Origin: Rebecca billardiae RCC1528
Taxonomy: Eukaryota > Protista > Haptophyta
Direction of reading: 5' to 3'
Length of the DNA stretch: 64,000 nt
Assembly (NCBI GenBank): GCA_965240325.2
Contig: OZ251232.1
Coordinates: forward strand, 2,108,001 to 2,172,000
Each line of letters begins with the position of its first letter. Within the stretch, counting starts at the first letter, position 1. A program made the translations under genes and the position numbers. Shown here one piece after another: positions 10,004 to 40,023 of this stretch. The notes beneath the pieces were generated by a model that searched no databases, was not told where the DNA came from, and was given only the letters and a program-made list of their open reading frames with translations.

Positions 10004-10489
10004 GTGCGACGGTGCCGGCGGCGGGCGGTCTAGTCATCATCGACATCAGCAGCCCGGCCACTGAGCCGTCTCGGACGGCCTCAGTCACGCCCGCGCGCGC
10101 ATGGTGCACGTGCGCCCGGGGGACGGGGGCACGCGCCCACGGGGGCGCTGCGACACTCCGCGCTGCGCACGACGACCGTATACTGCTGGTACTACTCACG
10201 TACCGTAGTCTTCGAGACCGGCTACGTCCGCCAGCCAGGTGCCACTGCCAGTCGGGCCAGTTACGCCGTCGCGCGCACATAGTCCCGCGGTGCCGATGAC
10301 ACTAAGTGTCACGTGTGCCGCGCGCACACTGGCTACGTCCGCACCGGCACGACCATATTGCTTGCGCTGATGGTGATATTGGATCATCACGGGCAGGCCG
10401 GACGCGTATACCCGTAACCCGCCACCAACTACCATAACCAAGCGACAGGCCACTGACACTCGCCGAGCGACGCATGGACCCTCACCCTG

Positions 10490-10612
10490 TGTTAAGCTTT
10501 GCGCCGAGTCCTTAACCACTCGGACACGCAAAAGCTCCCACGACGCGTCGTGGGGGCTTTTGCGTGTCCGAGTGGTTAAGGACTCGGCTCAAAAGCTTAA
10601 CATAACGCGGTT
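10490..10612. repeat. Near-perfect head-to-head palindrome at the E2 tail (centre cacgacg|cgtcgtg, 10545/10546)
   Basis: 10490-10545 is a slightly diverged reverse complement of the arm starting at 10546. Confidence 0.92.
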
Positions 10613-10858
10613 CCTTCCGGCGGGTTTGTTCTTTAGCCTGGTGTTGTTCCTTCACCAGCGTTCCGACGGGCCGCGGGCCATCCGCCGTCCCGCTCTCATG
10701 AGCCTTTCAGGGACGGATCTTCACCCCGTTCAGCGGGAGTGAAGAAAGAAGCGCACTTTCGGGCGAAAGAGCGTTGCGCAACCGGATTCGAAACCGCGTT
10801 ATGTTAAGCTTTTGAGCCGAGTCCTTAACCACTCGGACACGCAAAAGCCCCCACGACG
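10546..10858 (-). mobile_element. tRNA-headed fold-back element E2 (67-bp perfect TIRs)
   Basis: 10546-10612 and 10792-10858 are exact inverted repeats. Minus strand reads GTGTCCGAGTGGTTAAGGA (A box/D-arm), CTCAAAA, and GTTTCGAATCC (B box). Shares GTGCGCTTCTTTC and AGAACAAACC with E1. Confidence 0.7.
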
Positions 10859-32661: not shown

Positions 32662-32946
32662 GTGCGCGCGCGGGCCGAGCGCGCGGCGGCCCTTGGGCTG
32701 GATGGCGGCGCTGGAGGGCAGCGCCGTGCCGCGCTGGCTCGCTGCTACTCGCGGCGCTCACTGCTCAGGCGTGAAGTGCGCACGGTGCGGCAGTGCGGGC
32801 GTAGCTAGGGCTGGGCACCAGCGCGGGTACAGTAACGGTCGCCTCGGCGATCGATCGACCGCGAGCTGCGTGATCGCCGTGGCCTTCGGGCGACGAGGAC
32901 ATATAATATATATATTATATAATATATATATATATAATATATATAT

Positions 32947-33212
32947 GTGTCCTCCTGCATGAAGAGCGACGCGACGCCATTGAGTATGGACGAACATCAC
33001 CCACAGTCTGCGTGATGTGCATGCGAGGGCAGGTATTGCAGCATATATGCGAGCATGCAGCAAATGCCGATACACACCATGCCGAAATGGTGATGTATAA
33101 ATATATACTTGCGCGTGGTGGGGATTTGTCCCTGGCTGAACGGGAAGAGCGACTGAGCCGACGGTGCCAAAGCTGCGCGCAGACTGCGCCAGCGTGTGGC
33201 AGCAAGGTCCCG
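32947..33212 (+). repeat. Left terminal repeat A (inverted partner at 38566-38831)
   Basis: gtgtcctcctgcatg...aaggtcccg is the reverse complement of cgggacctt...catgcaggaggacac. Confidence 0.97.
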
Positions 33213-33424
33213 GGCCAACCCGGCCACGGCGCGATCGGCGCCGGCGCGCACTCGCTCGATGCCGTCGACCTCGCCCAGCATGCTCTCGACGCTTGGCCCT
33301 CGGGTTTTGGCTTGCCGACGGGCCACTAAGTGGGCGCCCGCCGGCGGATTGCTGCCCGCTTCTCTCGCCGGCGTCCGCGGCGGCGGTCGCCGCCGGGCCC
33401 GCGGGCGCTGCCGCGCGCGCGGCG

Positions 33425-36400
33425 ATGAGCGCCGAGGTGCCCCTGCCGGCGGTACCACCTGCTGCTCCCTTGCCGGGTGGGCTGGCCGCCGCTGCCTCGC
33501 CGCGGTCGCTGCGTGCTGAGGCTGCGCGCGCAGGCGACTCGTCATCTGCCGCCTCCTCGCCAGTCGCGGCGGTGACGGCGGGCGTGGGTGCTGCCGTGCT
33601 GCTTGCCCGCGCGCGGCTGCAGCCGCCCCGCGTCGACGGCGCCAAGCGCGCGCGCCCAACCGCGCCGGCTGTCGGCTGCGATGCGCCGCCGCCGCCGCTC
33701 GCGCCGGCGGGGCGGGGCGGCTCCACGCCTCTCGCTTCGCTGGCGCCGGGCGTGGCTGCCTCAGCGCTGCTCGACCGCTCGCGGCTGCCGCCGCCTCGCG
33801 TCGGCGGAGACGCGCGGGCTCGCCAGGCGGCGACATCTGCCGGCGCCGGTGCGCCGCCGCCGCTGCGCGCGCCTGCGGCGCGCAGCGGAGGTGGCATGCC
33901 GCCATCGCGGCTGGCGTGGGTCGAGCCGACACGCACGCTCAGTGCATCCACGGACTCCAGCACCTCGCTGCTGGCGCTCGTCGTCGCTCTCGACGATCCC
34001 GACGCGCCGCTCATCCTCGCCGGTCGACGCGCGCCCGGCGGCGCGCCGACTTCCTTTCTGGGCTCATCCACGTCGTCGTGCCCCCGCTCAGAGGCGTGCC
34101 CACGGGCCGAGTCTCTCGTCGCACGCGCGCTCACGGGTGGCCCGCCGCTGACGGGCATCTACGCCACACGCCTGCGCGGCGCCGAGTGCCGCTTTGGCGG
34201 CGAGGCGCACGTCGTGGCCCTTCCCAGCCGAACGCGCCCGCCGCGCTCGCCGATGCTCGCTGCTGGCTGCGAGTGGTTCCCTTTGGGCGCGTTCGCCGGC
34301 TCCGACTTGTACGAGCCGGCCGCCGCTGCGTGTGCAGCGCTCGTGGACGTCCTCCCTCGTCGCATGCCTCCTCTCGCCGCGACGGGTCCGGCCGGTTCCT
34401 CGGCCGCGCGCGATCTGGCGCTGGCGGCCGCCAGGCAGCGCTCGTGGGCGCAAGGGGCGCGCGCGGCCGAGGCGACCGACGCCGCTCTGCGGGCGATGAT
34501 CGCTGTACGCGCCGCCTCCTTGCCGGCCACGGAAGGCCAGTCGCTCACCGGCTGGGGCGATCGCGTGCGCACCGACCGCTCCAGCATCCCTGTCGCCCTG
34601 CAGGGTCACTCGATGCGCGTGCCGCTCGGGTCGCTCGCCGCGCTCCCCTTTGACTCCACGTCGGCGCGCTTTGACCCTCCTCACACCAACGTGCCGACGC
34701 CGCGGCGGCAGCGTGCGACTTCGTACCGCCCGCGGTCGGTTGCTGACATCCTCTTACCCGCGGCGCTCGAGCTCGTCGCGGGCTGGCGCCGCCGCGAGGA
34801 GGCCGACCTGCGCGCGTACCTCTCGCTCGGCTCAGCCGCCCGGCGCACCAACGCGCCGCTCGCCATCGGCCAGGACCTCTTCCACCCGGAGGCCCGCGGC
34901 ATCGTCTGGGACCTTCGGAGCAAGGTGGACGGCGTGTACTTGCCGCTCGACTTCTCGGCGCCGCTCGAGTCGCGCACGCTCATGCCGGACGCCCTCGAAG
35001 CTGCCGTCGGTCCCGACTTCCCCGACCGCGAGCTGCTCTCCTTTGTGCGCCACGGTGTGCGGTTCAAGGCCGATGTGGCTCTCCAGCTCGTGCTGCTGCC
35101 GCACCTCACCACCCTCGGCGCGGCCGCCTCCTCCGTGCACAAGGAGCTCCTCCGCCTCGCGGCGCGCGGCTGGTACAGCTTCTGGGACGACTTCCCGTTC
35201 CTCCCGTGCCGGCTCAGCCCGCAGGGGTCCACGCCGCGCAAGCTCGAGCCGGACCGGCACCGCCGCACGACCGATGGCGGCGCGCCCCGCCGCGCGCTCG
35301 TCGACACAGCTGGCGTGCCTGTCATCCCGCTCAACGTCGCTGTCGGTCTCCACGACGAGGTCGCTGACGCGGCCGCGGGCTGGCACGACGTGCCCCGCCC
35401 AGCAGCGGCTGCCCCGTCCGCCGCGGCCGAGCGGATGATCGCAGCGGGTCTTACGCCCACCCTGCCGCGCGCGCCGCCGCGCAAGTGGCCGCGCGAAGCC
35501 AAGCCCACGGTCGGCGGCAAGATGCACGACAACGCGATCCTGCTCGACGCCGCCGCCGTGTTTGGCGAGCCAATACTCACGCTCACAGACGACGTGGCCG
35601 ACTTCTTCAACCACCTCGGCGTCGCAACGGCCGAGCTGCCAAACGTCTGCCTCCTCTGGCTGCGGCCGGACGGCGAGGGCGTTGCCGCCGGCGGCCACGT
35701 CGTCGTCTCTGAGTCGCGCCTCGGCTTTGGGCTCTCGCCCAGCAGTAACATCGCGCAGCGCCTAAGCACGACCGTCGTGCAGATCGCCTCGCGGTGCTTC
35801 GACGACGAGGAGCTGCCGCGCTTCGAGGCGATGCTCGCTGACCCGCTGACGCCCCCTGCTGTGCGCAGCTGGATCGAGCAGCGCCGTGCGCTCGCGGTGA
35901 CCACGCGGCGCCCCCAGCTGCGCCTCTTCAGCGGCGACTGCTTCACGGACGACACCAACTTCTCCATCGTCGGCGTGGACAGAACGGTGCGCTTTCTCTC
36001 CGTCTGGCACCGCGTCACCACCAGCCTCGGCCTGCTCATGGCCATCCCCGAGAAGCGCCAAATCGGCCAGTCAGCGCTCTGGCTCGGCTGCGACTTTGTC
36101 GTCTGCGCTGGCGTCCTCGCGGTGCCGCCGGCCAAGATCCTGCGCGCTCTCGTCATCCTGGACGACTTGCTGGCGAGCAGGCCGGTACCCTTCTCTACCT
36201 TTCGCGCGCTCGTCGGTCTGCTCGAGCACTTCCGCCCGCTCACGCCGGCGAACCGCACGTTCTTCTACGGCCTGTACACGCACTTCGGCGAGCTCGGACG
36301 CCACCCAGCGCGGCCGGTGCCCATCACCGCCACGCTCCGCGCCGCGTGCGCGCGCTGGGCCAAGCTCCTGCGCTCCACCGCGGGCGTGCTCTTCTCCAAC

Positions 36401-37078
36401 GCGCTGCCGGGCCCCTCGACCCGCCGGCACCTGCCGGCCGCGGCGCCGCCTGCGTTCGTGCTCTTCTCGGACGCCGCCAAGGATGGCGCGCGCGTGCCGT
36501 CGCTGGGGGGCTACGCCCACGGGCTCTGCTGGAGCCTGCCCTTGCGCGCGTCGGACCTCGCTCTGCCGGTGGTCGCGCTCGAGTTCGTCGCGCTGTTCGC
36601 CAACGTGCTGATCTTCGCGCCGCGCATTGCAGGCGCCGTCATCCGGCTCCGCACCGACAGCTCTGTCACCGACCACATCCTCCACAACCTGTCCGCGCAC
36701 TCCCCGCTGCTGCAGCACGCGCACCTCGCGCTGCTCGACGCCCCTGAATGGCGGGCGATCGCAGAGCTGGCCGACTCGGAGTTCCTCCTCTCCGAGATGA
36801 ACCCGTTGGCGGACGCAGCTAGCCGCGGCGAGTTTGGCGTCCTCGAGCGCCTGTGCGCCCAGCTCGGCCTACGCCCGACGTGGCTCGCAGTGCCCGTCGT
36901 GCGCGTGCAGGCGCTGCTTGACGAGCTCGTCGCGCTGCTCTCGCGTCCGCTCGTCCTCGCTGCCGATCCGCCCATGCCGCTGCGCGGTGAGCGCGTGGGC
37001 GAGGCCAGCAACCCTGGGCCGGTGTGGCGGCGCTCGCGAGTCCGTGGCGCGCCGCCCGCGGTGGGCGCTTGTCGCTGA
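33425..37078 (+). CDS. Reverse transcriptase + RNase H polyprotein of DIRS type (frame open from 33164; first ATG at 33425)
   Basis: RT motifs TDDVADFFNHL, RLGFGLSPSS, FTDD (35942-35953), KRQIGQSALWLG. DIRS-like RNase H motifs LFSDAA, LEFVAL, LRTDS, NPLADAASR. Confidence 0.88.
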   Translation: MSAEVPLPAVPPAAPLPGGLAAAASPRSLRAEAARAGDSSSAASSPVAAVTAGVGAAVLLARARLQPPRVDGAKRARPTAPAVGCDAPPPPLAPAGRGGSTPLASLAPGVAASALLDRSRLPPPRVGGDARARQAATSAGAGAPPPLRAPAARSGGGMPPSRLAWVEPTRTLSASTDSSTSLLALVVALDDPDAPLILAGRRAPGGAPTSFLGSSTSSCPRSEACPRAESLVARALTGGPPLTGIYATRLRGAECRFGGEAHVVALPSRTRPPRSPMLAAGCEWFPLGAFAGSDLYEPAAAACAALVDVLPRRMPPLAATGPAGSSAARDLALAAARQRSWAQGARAAEATDAALRAMIAVRAASLPATEGQSLTGWGDRVRTDRSSIPVALQGHSMRVPLGSLAALPFDSTSARFDPPHTNVPTPRRQRATSYRPRSVADILLPAALELVAGWRRREEADLRAYLSLGSAARRTNAPLAIGQDLFHPEARGIVWDLRSKVDGVYLPLDFSAPLESRTLMPDALEAAVGPDFPDRELLSFVRHGVRFKADVALQLVLLPHLTTLGAAASSVHKELLRLAARGWYSFWDDFPFLPCRLSPQGSTPRKLEPDRHRRTTDGGAPRRALVDTAGVPVIPLNVAVGLHDEVADAAAGWHDVPRPAAAAPSAAAERMIAAGLTPTLPRAPPRKWPREAKPTVGGKMHDNAILLDAAAVFGEPILTLTDDVADFFNHLGVATAELPNVCLLWLRPDGEGVAAGGHVVVSESRLGFGLSPSSNIAQRLSTTVVQIASRCFDDEELPRFEAMLADPLTPPAVRSWIEQRRALAVTTRRPQLRLFSGDCFTDDTNFSIVGVDRTVRFLSVWHRVTTSLGLLMAIPEKRQIGQSALWLGCDFVVCAGVLAVPPAKILRALVILDDLLASRPVPFSTFRALVGLLEHFRPLTPANRTFFYGLYTHFGELGRHPARPVPITATLRAACARWAKLLRSTAGVLFSNALPGPSTRRHLPAAAPPAFVLFSDAAKDGARVPSLGGYAHGLCWSLPLRASDLALPVVALEFVALFANVLIFAPRIAGAVIRLRTDSSVTDHILHNLSAHSPLLQHAHLALLDAPEWRAIAELADSEFLLSEMNPLADAASRGEFGVLERLCAQLGLRPTWLAVPVVRVQALLDELVALLSRPLVLAADPPMPLRGERVGEASNPGPVWRRSRVRGAPPAVGACR

Positions 37079-37295
37079 GACACGGACGCCGCTGCATCGA
37101 CTGCTCGCCAGTCGCGCGGCGCAGTTTGGCGGCGGCCGCCGCCCGTCGCGCTCGCGCTGCAGTCGCGCTCGCAGCCGGATCCGGCCCTCGCACCGGCGCA
37201 CGCGTTGCCGGCTCCGCTGGGAGGCGCGCTCTGGCGACGCGGCGCACATCTCTCGCTCAAGTTGCAGCAACATCGTCTCTACGCTTCGGCCAAGC

Positions 37296-38515
37296 CTTTG
37301 TAGGCCACCAGCCTTTGTGGGCACAGCCTTTGCAGGCATACCCGTGACCTTTGTAGGCACAGCCTTTGTAGGCACACCCGTGACCTTTGTAGGCACAGCC
37401 TTTGTAGGCACACCCGTGACCTTTGTAGGCACAGCCTTTGTAGGCACACCCGTGACCTTTGTAGGCACACCAGTGACCTTTGTAGGCACAGCCTTTGTAG
37501 GCACACCAGTGACCTTTGTAATTGTAGGCACAGCCTTTGTAGGCACACCCGTGACCTTTGTAGGCCACACCAGTGACCTTTGTAGGCACACCAGTGACCT
37601 TTGTAGGCACAGCCTTTGTAGGCACATCCGTGACCTTTGTAGGCACACCAGTGACCTTTGTAGGCACAGCCTTTGTAGGCACACCCGTGACCTTTGTAGG
37701 CACAGCCTTTGTAGGCACACCCGTGACCTTTGTAGGCACAGCCTTTGTAGGCACACCAGTGACCTTTGTAATTGTAGGCACAGCCTTTGTAGGCACACCC
37801 GTGACCTTTGTAGGCACACCAGTGACCTTTGTAGGCACAGCCTTTGTAGGCACACCAGTGACCTTTGTAATTGTAGGCACAGCCTTTGTAGGCACACCCG
37901 TGACCTTTGTAGGCACACCAGTGACCTTTGTAGGCACAGCCTTTGTAGGCACACCCGTGACCTTTGTAGGCACAGCCTTTGTAGGCACACCCGTGACCTT
38001 TGTAGGCCACACCAGTGACCTTTGTAGGCACACCAGTGACCTTTGTAGGCACAGCCTTTGTAGGCACATCCGTGACCTTTGTAGGCACACCAGTGACCTT
38101 TGTAGGCACAGCCTTTGTAGGCACACCCGTGACCTTTGTAGGCACAGCCTTTGTAGGCACACCCGTGACCTTTGTAGGCACAGCCTTTGTAGGCACACCA
38201 GTGACCTTTGTAATTGTAGGCACAGCCTTTGTAGGCACACCCGTGACCTTTGTAGGCACACCAGTGACCTTTGTAGGCACACCAGTGACCTTTGTAGGCA
38301 CAGCCTTTGTAGGCACACCCGTGACCTTTGTAGGCACAGCCTTTGTAGGCACACCCGTGACCTTTGTAGGCCACACCAGTGACCTTTGTAGGCACACCAG
38401 TGACCTTTGTAGGCACAGCCTTTGTAGGCACATCCGTGACCTTTGTAGGCACACCAGTGACCTTTGTAGGCACAGCCTTTGTAGGCACAGCCCTTGCGGG
38501 CCAGACCTTTGTAGG
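37296..38515. repeat. Composite minisatellite (15-bp ctttgtaggcacagc and 21-bp ctttgtaggcacacc(c/a)gtgac units) with higher-order structure
   Basis: Rare variant units (ggccacacc, catccg, gtaattgta) recur in the same order at spacings of 442 and 364 bp. Confidence 0.97.
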
Positions 38516-38565
38516 TCCGGAGGTCCCCACGCACCCACCCCCGAACTCGCTTTCCTGCTCACAAA

Positions 38566-39275
38566 CGGGACCTTGCTGCCACACGCTGGCGCAGTCTGCG
38601 CGCAGCTTTGGCACCGTCGGCTCAGTCGCTCTTCCCGTTCAGCCAGGGACAAATCCCCACCACGCGCAAGTATATATTTATACATCACCATTTCGGCATG
38701 GTGTGTATCGGCATTTGCTGCATGCTCGCATATATGCTGCAATACCTGCCCTCGCATGCACATCACGCAGACTGTGGGTGATGTTCGTCCATACTCAATG
38801 GCGTCGCGTCGCTCTTCATGCAGGAGGACACGTGGCGTTATAACGGAGTTATAACCGAGTGTGTCGGGAGGCTGGAAAGGCAACGCGCAGCTGGTGGACA
38901 AGGGCAGCCATCGTCTTCTAGGTCCTGCAGGTAGTTGCAGTCGATTTCCGGAGCTCATCGGCCACGGAGCTATCCTTTATCATCATCATGGCGGGCGCTG
39001 GTCCTTTCATATCGGCCAACCACACTGGCTCCTCTGTAAGTACCCGCTCCTCTCCACTATCCGGCGCTCGAGATCATATACAAGGTCATCTTAAGTCGGC
39101 GTGGCAACTTACCAAAGTTCATATCAAGCAGCCCACCTAGCAGAGCTCGCTCGATCATCGGTTACACGACCTTTCGGGCCGAGCTGCTCATCTCTCGGCA
39201 GCCCCTGCTTCGGCCTGCGCATCTGCAAAGCCCGAGGTCCCGCCATCTCCTCTGCGTTCTTTGCTTGTGCTCGTT
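38566..39275. repeat. Internal complementary region A'B
   Basis: Junction gaggacac|gtggcgtt at 38831/38832 is the reverse complement of right end aacgccac joined to left end gtgtcctc. Confidence 0.95.
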
Positions 39276-39364
39276 CCCTGGCTCAGGCAAGCGCAGCACT
39301 CACAGGCCTGACGACAAGGTTGTCAACCACAACGGAGGCTGCAGGGGCGGATGGCGGGTTTCGC

Positions 39365-39808
39365 AACGAGCACAAGCAAAGAACGCAGAGGAGATGGCGG
39401 GACCTCGGGCTTTGCAGATGCGCAGGCCGAAGCAGGGGCTGCCGAGAGATGAGCAGCTCGGCCCGAAAGGTCGTGTAACCGATGATCGAGCGAGCTCTGC
39501 TAGGTGGGCTGCTTGATATGAACTTTGGTAAGTTGGCACGCCGACTTAAGATGACCTTGTATATGATCTCGAGCGCCGGATAGTGGAGAGGAGCGGGTAC
39601 TTACAGAGGAGCCAGTGTGGTTGGCCGATATGAAAGGACCAGCGCCCGCCATGATGATGATAAAGGATAGCTCCGTGGCCGATGAGCTCCGGAAATCGAC
39701 TGCAACTACCTGCAGGACCTAGAAGACGATGGCTGCCCTTGTCCACCAGCTGCGCGTTGCCTTTCCAGCCTCCCGACACACTCGGTTATAACTCCGTTAT
39801 AACGCCAC
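39365..39808. repeat. Right terminal repeat B' (inverted copy of 38832-39275; 89-bp spacer)
   Basis: 444-bp inverted repeat with one mismatch seen (gtggcaact vs gtgccaact). Confidence 0.97.
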
Positions 39809-40023
39809 ATATTATATCGATACAATGCGACGAGGGACCCACCTAAATTATTCATACAGCATACATTATTACATATGTATATATATATCTGATAGTACAC
39901 ACACACATCACACACGTATATAGCGAGTGATACCGAAGCGCGCAATGCCACTAGCAAGCTAGTTGAGTCGTCCTACGTATACGACTCGCAGTGCGCGCGG
40001 GGGCCACCCGGCGGTAGTTAGTC

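Follow-up and report, generated by a model that had tools for sequence, protein, structure and literature searches.

The element at positions 32,947 to 39,808 of the window (the whole 64,000-nucleotide stretch of Rebecca billardiae RCC1528 DNA that we analysed) is very probably a single copy, rearranged and defective, from a young and multi-copy family of Ngaro-like tyrosine recombinase (YR) retrotransposons. A previous sequence-only reading had proposed a DIRS-type retroelement with a third, undescribed repeat design. Its placement as a YR (DIRS-order) retroelement in TA-rich DNA holds, but the layout is not a design: 12 other mapped copies have split direct repeats, and neither novel junction of the window copy occurs elsewhere in the genome. 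Moreover, the layout of the family is already described, as it matches the A1...B1A2B2 split direct repeats defined for Ngaro and PAT elements (PMC4157794, PMC6681497, PMC8547959).

Inverted repeats of the window copy

The inverted repeats reported from the sequence are real (Table 1). In a repeat search of the window, A and A′ (266 nt) as well as B and B′ (444 nt, with 89 nt separating the arms) were each 100% complementary, and perfect inverted repeats this long far exceed what chance would produce. The inner copies A′ and B adjoin at 38831/38832. Together they form 710 bp exactly complementary to the (circle) junction of the right end with the left end, also as originally noted. The only likeness between the two termini is GTG...CAC, and there are no inverted terminal repeats. 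No TSD is definable because the flanking DNA is TA-rich.

The order of modules in the window copy is rcX...X-Y-spacer-rcY (rc, reverse complement), versus the canonical Y...X-Y-spacer-X. Its outer pieces (rcX on one side, spacer plus rcY on the other) correspond to the terminal module in minus orientation, whereas the inner piece (5′-truncated core, minisatellite, X and Y) is in plus orientation; the window copy therefore contains two inverted pairs. Its outer ends are the canonical family termini, flipped relative to the core.

Table 1. Features of the rearranged element and its flanks (window positions)
Feature	Positions	Strand	Basis or details
Left flank, usual target of the family, here an imperfect (TA)n microsatellite	32895–32946	.	
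A, repeat X (B repeat in the A1..B1A2B2 scheme) as reverse complement, with the canonical 3′ terminus (...GGAGGACAC) flipped at the outer end	32947–33212	-	
ORF2, 1304 aa	33164–37078	+	motifs
Novel junction 1, rcX end (...GGTCCC) joined to core at GGGCC	33210–33215	.	alignment
RT in ORF2	about 35027–36100	+	LTDDVADFF at 35579, LGFGLSPSSN at 35720, FTDD at 35939
RNase H in ORF2	about 36460–36670	+	FSDAA, ALEFVAL, RTDSS
NPGP in ORF2	37010–37021	+	
Minisatellite array	37215–38565	+	
A′, repeat X at the canonical B1 position	38566–38831	+	
B, repeat Y at the canonical A2 position	38832–39275	+	private base A at 38906
“Loop”, reverse-complemented 86-nt family spacer preceded by CCC, the final 3 nt of rcX	39276–39364	-	alignment
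B′, repeat Y as reverse complement, with the canonical 5′ terminus (GTGGCGTTATAAC...) flipped at the outer end	39365–39808	-	mirror of private base at 39734
Right flank, AT-rich DNA	39809–39900	.	

Canonical structure and distribution of the family

The canonical structure of the family is Y (444 nt, A1), ORF1, ORF2 (RT and RNase H, to which the autonomous subfamily adds YR), X (266 nt, B1), Y (A2), an 86-nt spacer and X (B2). This layout of split direct repeats is present in 12 of 12 other mapped copies in the 72-Mb genome. We put the number of canonical copies at at least 12, which are the mapped ones; copies C31, C12, C16, C29, C34 and C38 were judged by coordinates only. The genome contains more than 200 matches to the element, and the window locus is the sole full-length match. 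Solos (Y-spacer-X) and copies with internal deletions also occur, and every break in the deletion derivatives lies at the Y end plus 0–6 nt. We rejected splicing as the source of these deletions, as no AG precedes the acceptor-side joints inspected or the start of the core in the window copy.

The termini are identical throughout the family (GTGGCG...GGACAC), and repeat A of the window copy is 100% identical to X of most other copies. The length of the minisatellite array differs among copies. (TA)n or (CA)n flanks each of the 12 mapped canonical copies, and the family inserts strictly into these microsatellites. A literature search on microsatellite targeting by YR retroelements returned nothing relevant. 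The family is young, multi-copy and recently active, and the recent activity suggested by the sequence-only reading is supported. A distant relative from a marine metagenome (L035) has the A1..B1A2B2 layout and no inverted repeats.

These comparisons bear on the suggestion that the window copy exemplifies a third architecture that is functional, with ends regenerated from the 710-bp complementary region as template and the 444-bp hairpin acting as its own primer. Formally, the exact complementarity of A′B to the end-to-end junction is the same principle as that of the internal complementary region in DIRS1 (PMC6681497). However, the arrangement is a single copy without descendants in the genome, near and distant relatives all have split direct repeats, and the window copy lacks ORF1 and YR. 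Neither the complementary region nor the hairpin is a feature of the family. Given that ORF1 and the recombinase are absent, nothing suggests that the window copy replicates via either structure, and we consider a functional third architecture extremely unlikely.

Coding content

ORF1 (812 aa) is located in the gag position of canonical copies and is absent from the window copy. The N-terminal half of ORF2 is of low complexity and is followed by RT and then RNase H. A Pfam search with 13 ORFs from both strands of the window copy yielded zero matches, RVT_1 included, and a PDB sequence search likewise found nothing. When an AF2 model of ORF2 was compared using Foldseek, the top PDB hits were all retroviral or LTR-type RTs (probability 0.98–1.0), and the best matches were retroviral, Ty3 and CaMV RTs. 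A profile search retrieved 3039 related clusters in public data; at about 3,000 clusters, the RT clade is large, though invisible to Pfam. In the ESM Atlas, we found only unnamed or generic RVT_1 clusters. Of the 23 long relatives, a single one has the 2A-like NPGP motif, which departs from the DxExNPGP consensus in that its E is displaced by one position.

The minisatellite has periods of 36, 21 and 15 bp, a GC content of 55% and a perfect internal duplication (300-nt copies at 37522–37821 and 37964–38263, spaced by 442 bp). It occupies the site at which a sister subfamily (~95%; L032, L033 and L008) encodes a linker and a tyrosine recombinase. In the sister subfamily, RT, RNase H, linker and YR form one ORF in that order. 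The YR of these three sequences matches PF00589 at 27.9 bits (cut-off 27.1) and shows the residues R, HxxR and Y. Neither the window copy nor its subfamily has a tyrosine recombinase, and this recombinase-less subfamily still spreads.

Among the 23 long relatives, YR is present in six and a methyltransferase in none at E<=0.001; the polyproteins of L032 and L008 likewise gave no methyltransferase match at E<=1, the sensitivity of both searches being limited by divergence.

Novel joints and origin of the rearrangement

Both novel joints of the window copy coincide with boundaries of repeat modules, and a base-level alignment revealed a 3-bp CCC overlap common to both. They are 6,063 bp apart. 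At junction 1, canonical copies instead carry ORF1 sequence (...GTGTTC) upstream. At junction 2, the Y end GCTCGTT meets CCC at 39275/39276, followed by the spacer, which normally sits between A2 and B2 and is here in minus orientation. The 80-mers that span junction 1 (A to core) and junction 2 (Y to CCC-spacer) are each unique in the 72-Mb genome.

Position 75 of Y is A solely in the two arms of the window copy, and is C in 38 of 38 other genome matches scored. Since both hairpin arms share this private base, they derive from one molecule, although arm-to-arm gene conversion could also have produced the shared base.

Aberrant template switching in reverse transcription is the most likely origin of the window copy. 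If the element is what we take it to be, there is about an even chance, judging from the positions of the joints, that the structure arose in this way within one replication cycle. The reverse transcriptase would have switched templates at module ends, onto the strand of opposite sense, and the Y end would have served as the same breakpoint that appears in the many internal-deletion derivatives of the family. A recombinase supplied in trans could then have used the intact terminal junction to integrate the product. Both the hairpin and the complementary region would be by-products of these events and not a replication device. We also considered YR-mediated inversion at the palindromic CAC/GTG junction, and rejected it, as it predicts (worked out on paper) X/rcX joints and none were seen.

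The same order of modules can be derived on paper from a DNA rearrangement in situ, in which the interior of a canonical, 5′-truncated minus copy was later inverted and the spacer was then flipped between the inverted Y arms, with a 3-bp duplication. A shared private base is compatible with such a single parental element. However, this route requires two steps, inverted repeats that could drive an inversion are missing from a canonical copy, and both breakpoints must hit pre-existing module boundaries to the base. We therefore regard it as possible but rather unlikely.

The private base is harder to reconcile with a nested event, in which an older minus solo (rcX-spacer-rcY) was interrupted by a captured partial plus cDNA extending from the core to the Y end, with CCC as a 3-bp target duplication. 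Solos are common in the genome, CCC is found on either side of the inner piece, and this piece stops at the recurrent Y-end breakpoint. Yet the outer rcY and the inner Y would not be expected to share a base private to the window copy if they stemmed from two independent insertions. Random capture in a solo of the same family is very improbable when it must also hit a module boundary exactly, and the inner piece has no canonical termini and is not in TA. This scenario is improbable overall.

In the assembly, the flipped arrangement is unique to the window copy. Run X1, the only public run, was compared as short Logan contigs with positions 32880–37200; in this interval, canonical junctions alone are present at the A/core site and no contig bridges the A/core junction of the window copy. 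This result, the 100% identity of the arms and the highly repetitive nature of the family would fit an assembly artefact, whether through mis-joined reads of different family copies or a fold-back chimera. However, repeat-induced mis-joins swap copies within shared sequence and do not create a pair of new joints that lack homology and overlap by 3 bp. The locus is also in mid-contig with unique flanks on both sides, and the private base is common to both arms. An artefact is accordingly quite improbable.

Relationship to known YR retrotransposons

We call the family Ngaro-like because no methyltransferase was found, and the term should be read as referring to architecture, not to RT phylogeny. 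Ngaro elements are defined in PMC4157794, and that of Cafeteria burkhardae is a described Ngaro-like example (PMC8547959). The resemblance includes the A1-[ORFs]-B1A2B2 layout of canonical copies, with the internal repeats downstream of YR, a gag-position ORF1, the order RT, RNase H, YR without a detected methyltransferase, isolated AB “solo” repeats and ORF1-deleted variants. In contrast to Ngaro, RT, RNase H and YR are fused in a single ORF, (TA)n or (CA)n is the strict insertion target, and the dominant subfamily has a minisatellite in place of YR; the window copy itself lacks the split direct repeat layout. In addition, the Pfam models RVT_1 and RT_RNaseH detect the RT and RNase H of the Cafeteria Ngaro, but miss those of the family described here.

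PAT-like elements (Pat1, Kangaroo and TOC), whose hosts include algae, also have split direct repeats and encode a methyltransferase domain (PMC4157794). The family shares the split direct repeats, but a methyltransferase was detected neither in it nor in the 23 long relatives. With DIRS1-like elements (PMC6681497, PMC7192593), the window copy alone shares an internal region complementary to both termini, which is present in no other copy examined. Unlike DIRS1-like elements, it has no inverted terminal repeats and no methyltransferase, and its complementary region, at 710 bp, is not short and is confined to one copy.

Significance

As a design, the proposed new architecture does not exist, and recognising this averts the naming of a false new class. 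Transitions between architectures require intermediate forms that “are not observed” (PMC4157794). The window copy may represent a one-step conversion of a split-direct-repeat element into a layout with DIRS1-like complementary repeats. It is unlikely, but conceivable, that it is a natural intermediate from split direct repeats (Ngaro/PAT) to complementary repeats (DIRS1-type), formed by strand-inverting template switches in a single replication cycle, in which case such conversions would recur in the genome. If true, this would provide a concrete route for transitions between element architectures. Of more modest use is the family itself, which is Ngaro-like, very young, well resolved and strict in its targeting of microsatellites.

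Repeat structure and genomic setting

The element at 32947-39808 (the window copy) begins with GTGTCC and ends with GCCAC. A repeat search recovered two inverted pairs, A/A' and B/B' (see table), whose internal copies meet at 38831/38832. The flanks are TA-rich, whereas the window is 70% GC, and no TSD is definable in them. The repeats match the description in the sequence-only reading exactly. Below, X denotes A', Y denotes B, rc marks a reverse complement, and the loop is the 89 nt between B and B', namely CCC plus the reverse complement of the family's 86-nt spacer.

The motif GCGACGAGG(G)AC is present in both flanks (~50 nt left and ~20 nt right of the element), possibly by chance in GC-rich DNA. 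X and spacer modules of the family occur again at C15:2176480-2177125, ~4.5 kb past the window's right end.

Features of the window copy and its flanks
Feature	Position in window	Type	Properties
A / A'	32947-33212 / 38566-38831	inverted pair	266 nt, 100% complementary
B / B'	38832-39275 / 39365-39808	inverted pair	444 nt, 100% complementary, 89 nt separating the arms
ORF2	33164-37078	ORF	1304 aa
Tandem duplication	33550-33885	direct repeat	168 bp, 74% identity
NPGP	37010-37021	peptide motif	
Minisatellite	37215-38565	tandem repeat	36/21/15-bp periods, GC 55%; in place of the sister subfamily's linker and YR
Duplication within minisatellite	37522-37821 / 37964-38263	direct repeat	perfect 300-nt copies, 442-bp spacing
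GCGACGAGG(G)AC	32885-32897 / 39827-39840	flanking motif	

Layout of the family

Used as a query against the 72-Mb genome (41 contigs; the window is C15:2108001-2172000), the element had more than 200 matches, of which only that at the window locus was full-length. In all other long copies, the match begins where A ends, at query position 265. We determined the layout by mapping the segments of the sequence-only reading onto 14 loci from the genome. Read in the sense of the ORF, all mapped copies other than the window copy have the order Y, a 5′ region of 1.4-2.5 kb that is missing from the window copy, core, minisatellite, a spacer of ~170 bp, X, Y, the reverse complement of the window copy's loop, and X. 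This is the layout A1...B1-A2-B2, or split direct repeats, which has been assigned to Ngaro, PAT and VIPER elements (PMC4157794, PMC6681497, PMC8547959).

A marine-metagenome (Tara) relative with ~35-40% amino acid identity, L035, likewise has direct repeats (1-100 / 10584-10683 and 10314-10387 / 10716-10789) in the order A1...B1A2B2 and no inverted repeats, and the relative L036 has a B1/B2 pair of 300 nt. For the clade, then, split direct repeats are the usual layout. It had been proposed that the window copy represents a third design, in which a 710-bp complementary region templates end regeneration and circularisation and a 444-bp hairpin self-primes. This proposal is not supported, since the inverted layout occurs in none of the other mapped copies, and both of its joints are unique in the genome.

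Solo modules (Y-spacer-X) and internal-deletion copies retaining the 5′ Y are both common in the genome. All 12 other copies with readable termini, as well as the window copy, lie in a (TA)n or (CA)n microsatellite, so TA targeting is a property of the family. Their termini are identical (GTGGCGTTATAAC at one end, GGAGGACAC at the other). Two solos (L029:3241-4118, equivalent to C10:2786240-2787117, and C7:921538-922413) have in common a partial duplication of ~80 nt of the rcX end. This points to movement or duplication of the solo variant as such, rather than to a mere leftover of recombination.

Coding content and classification

No ORF of the window copy matches Pfam. However, the C-terminal 700 aa of ORF2 contain motifs of RT (LTDDVADFF, LGFGLSPSSN, FTDD) and RNase H (FSDAA, ALEFVAL, RTDSS). 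An AlphaFold model (11 homologues; mean pLDDT 57.7) is confident in the palm/thumb and RNase H only, and its top Foldseek matches in the PDB are all retroviral or LTR-type RTs (foamy virus, MMLV, Ty3, HIV-1 and CaMV; probability 0.98-1.0). A profile search found 3,039 related clusters (579 at E<=1e-30), many of them polyproteins of 1,400-3,600 aa. Among 23 long relatives, Pfam detected a Phage_integrase domain in six, and a methyltransferase (MT) or a recognisable RVT_1 in none. Its escape from Pfam marks this RT as unusually divergent. In all full-length copies, the low-complexity N-terminal half of ORF2 has a tandem duplication.

Across the whole genome, PF00589 matches occur only directly downstream of RT/RNase H homology in a ~95%-identical sister subfamily (C23, C18, C33, C12 and C38). 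Its single ORF encodes RT, RNase H, NPGP, a linker of ~250 aa and a tyrosine recombinase (YR) with R, HxxR and Y; scanned by itself, the recombinase part scores 27.9 bits (cut-off 27.1). The window's subfamily, whose copies are 99-100% identical to each other, has a minisatellite of variable length at the linker/YR position, and its ORF stops 22 codons past NPGP. At ~1.35 kb, versus 0.3-0.75 kb elsewhere, the window copy's minisatellite is the longest among the mapped copies. In the sister subfamily (L032:2410-5154), the NPGP motif falls between RNase H and the linker/YR; only one of 23 relatives has it, so it is not conserved, and relative to the DxExNPGP consensus its E is shifted by one position.

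Upstream, canonical copies also carry ORF1 (812 aa), which is in the gag position and has no Pfam match. At L024:6243-8681 (minus strand), it overlaps ORF2 by ~217 nt in a different frame. The window copy has neither ORF1 nor YR and is doubly defective.

Given the RT-RNase H-YR ORF of the sister subfamily and the minisatellite at the same position in the window's, the family is a YR retroelement with Ngaro-type architecture. With Ngaro it shares split direct repeats downstream of YR, the order RT-RH-YR, a gag-position ORF1 and no detected MT, and with Cafeteria Ngaro (PMC8547959) the solos and ORF1-deleted variants. By contrast, the MT expected for PAT was not detected, and neither the ITRs nor the MT of DIRS1 are present; membership in both groups fails on these grounds. 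Judged by its architecture, the family appears Ngaro-like, and the divergence of its RT may place it in a separate lineage within YR retroelements.

Origin of the rearranged copy

The outer ends of the window copy are the canonical termini, inverted relative to the core. Base-level alignment locates two joints on module boundaries, with a 3-bp overlap. At the first, the rcX end (...GGTCCC) is fused to the core at GGGCC, where canonical copies have ORF1 sequence; at the second, the Y end (...GCTCGTT) is fused to CCC followed by the reverse-oriented spacer. The locus therefore reads as a minus-oriented terminal module (rcX-spacer-rcY) whose rcX and spacer are parted by a plus-oriented segment, comprising 5′-truncated core, minisatellite, X and Y, with CCC on either side. 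The 80-mers spanning each joint have no other occurrence in the 72-Mb genome. Another copy (C31:995806-995850) has CCCTG after its Y end, identical over 5 nt to the window copy's Y-loop joint, which may be chance.

An assembly error is very improbable, since repeat-induced mis-joins do not make new non-homologous joints and the locus is mid-contig with unique flanks on both sides. A single public run contains any of the sequence. Its contigs have loose ends at 33211-33215, with canonical U-to-core, rcX-to-spacer-region and rcX-to-loop junctions, and none bridges the A-core joint; because contigs drop rare variants, this speaks neither for nor against the assembly.

At position 75, Y has A in both arms of the window copy (38906, mirror 39734), but C in 21/21 other aligned Y copies and 38/38 other scored genome matches. 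Hence the arms either derive from one molecule or were homogenised later. This shared private base speaks against an older, unrelated solo having been struck by the cDNA of another copy. Capture of a partial cDNA by a solo is improbable; it and assembly error are both less likely than the two origins that follow.

Given the family identity, we infer that the rearrangement most likely arose during reverse transcription, at about an even chance. Both joints match repeat-module ends to the base, and in the family's internal-deletion relatives the break is always at the Y end + 0-6 nt, making the Y end a recurrent switch point. On reaching the ends of its templates, the polymerase would have jumped to the opposite-sense strand, and the YR-bearing subfamily would have provided in trans the recombinase that integrated the product. 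Inversion of a canonical minus-oriented copy at the DNA level, followed by a flip of the spacer, gives the same order on paper, but is rather unlikely: it requires two steps, with both breakpoints exactly on module boundaries and no inverted homology as driver.

The window copy is thus a one-off rearranged copy within a family of Ngaro-type YR retroelements. In this copy alone, both termini have their complement in an internal region, formally as with the ICR of DIRS1; the copy occurs once and has left no descendants. The evolution of YR-element architectures requires intermediate forms, yet such forms "are not observed" (PMC4157794). The residual interest of the window copy lies in its being an actual case of such a form, with a split-direct-repeat element turned into a complementary-repeat layout.
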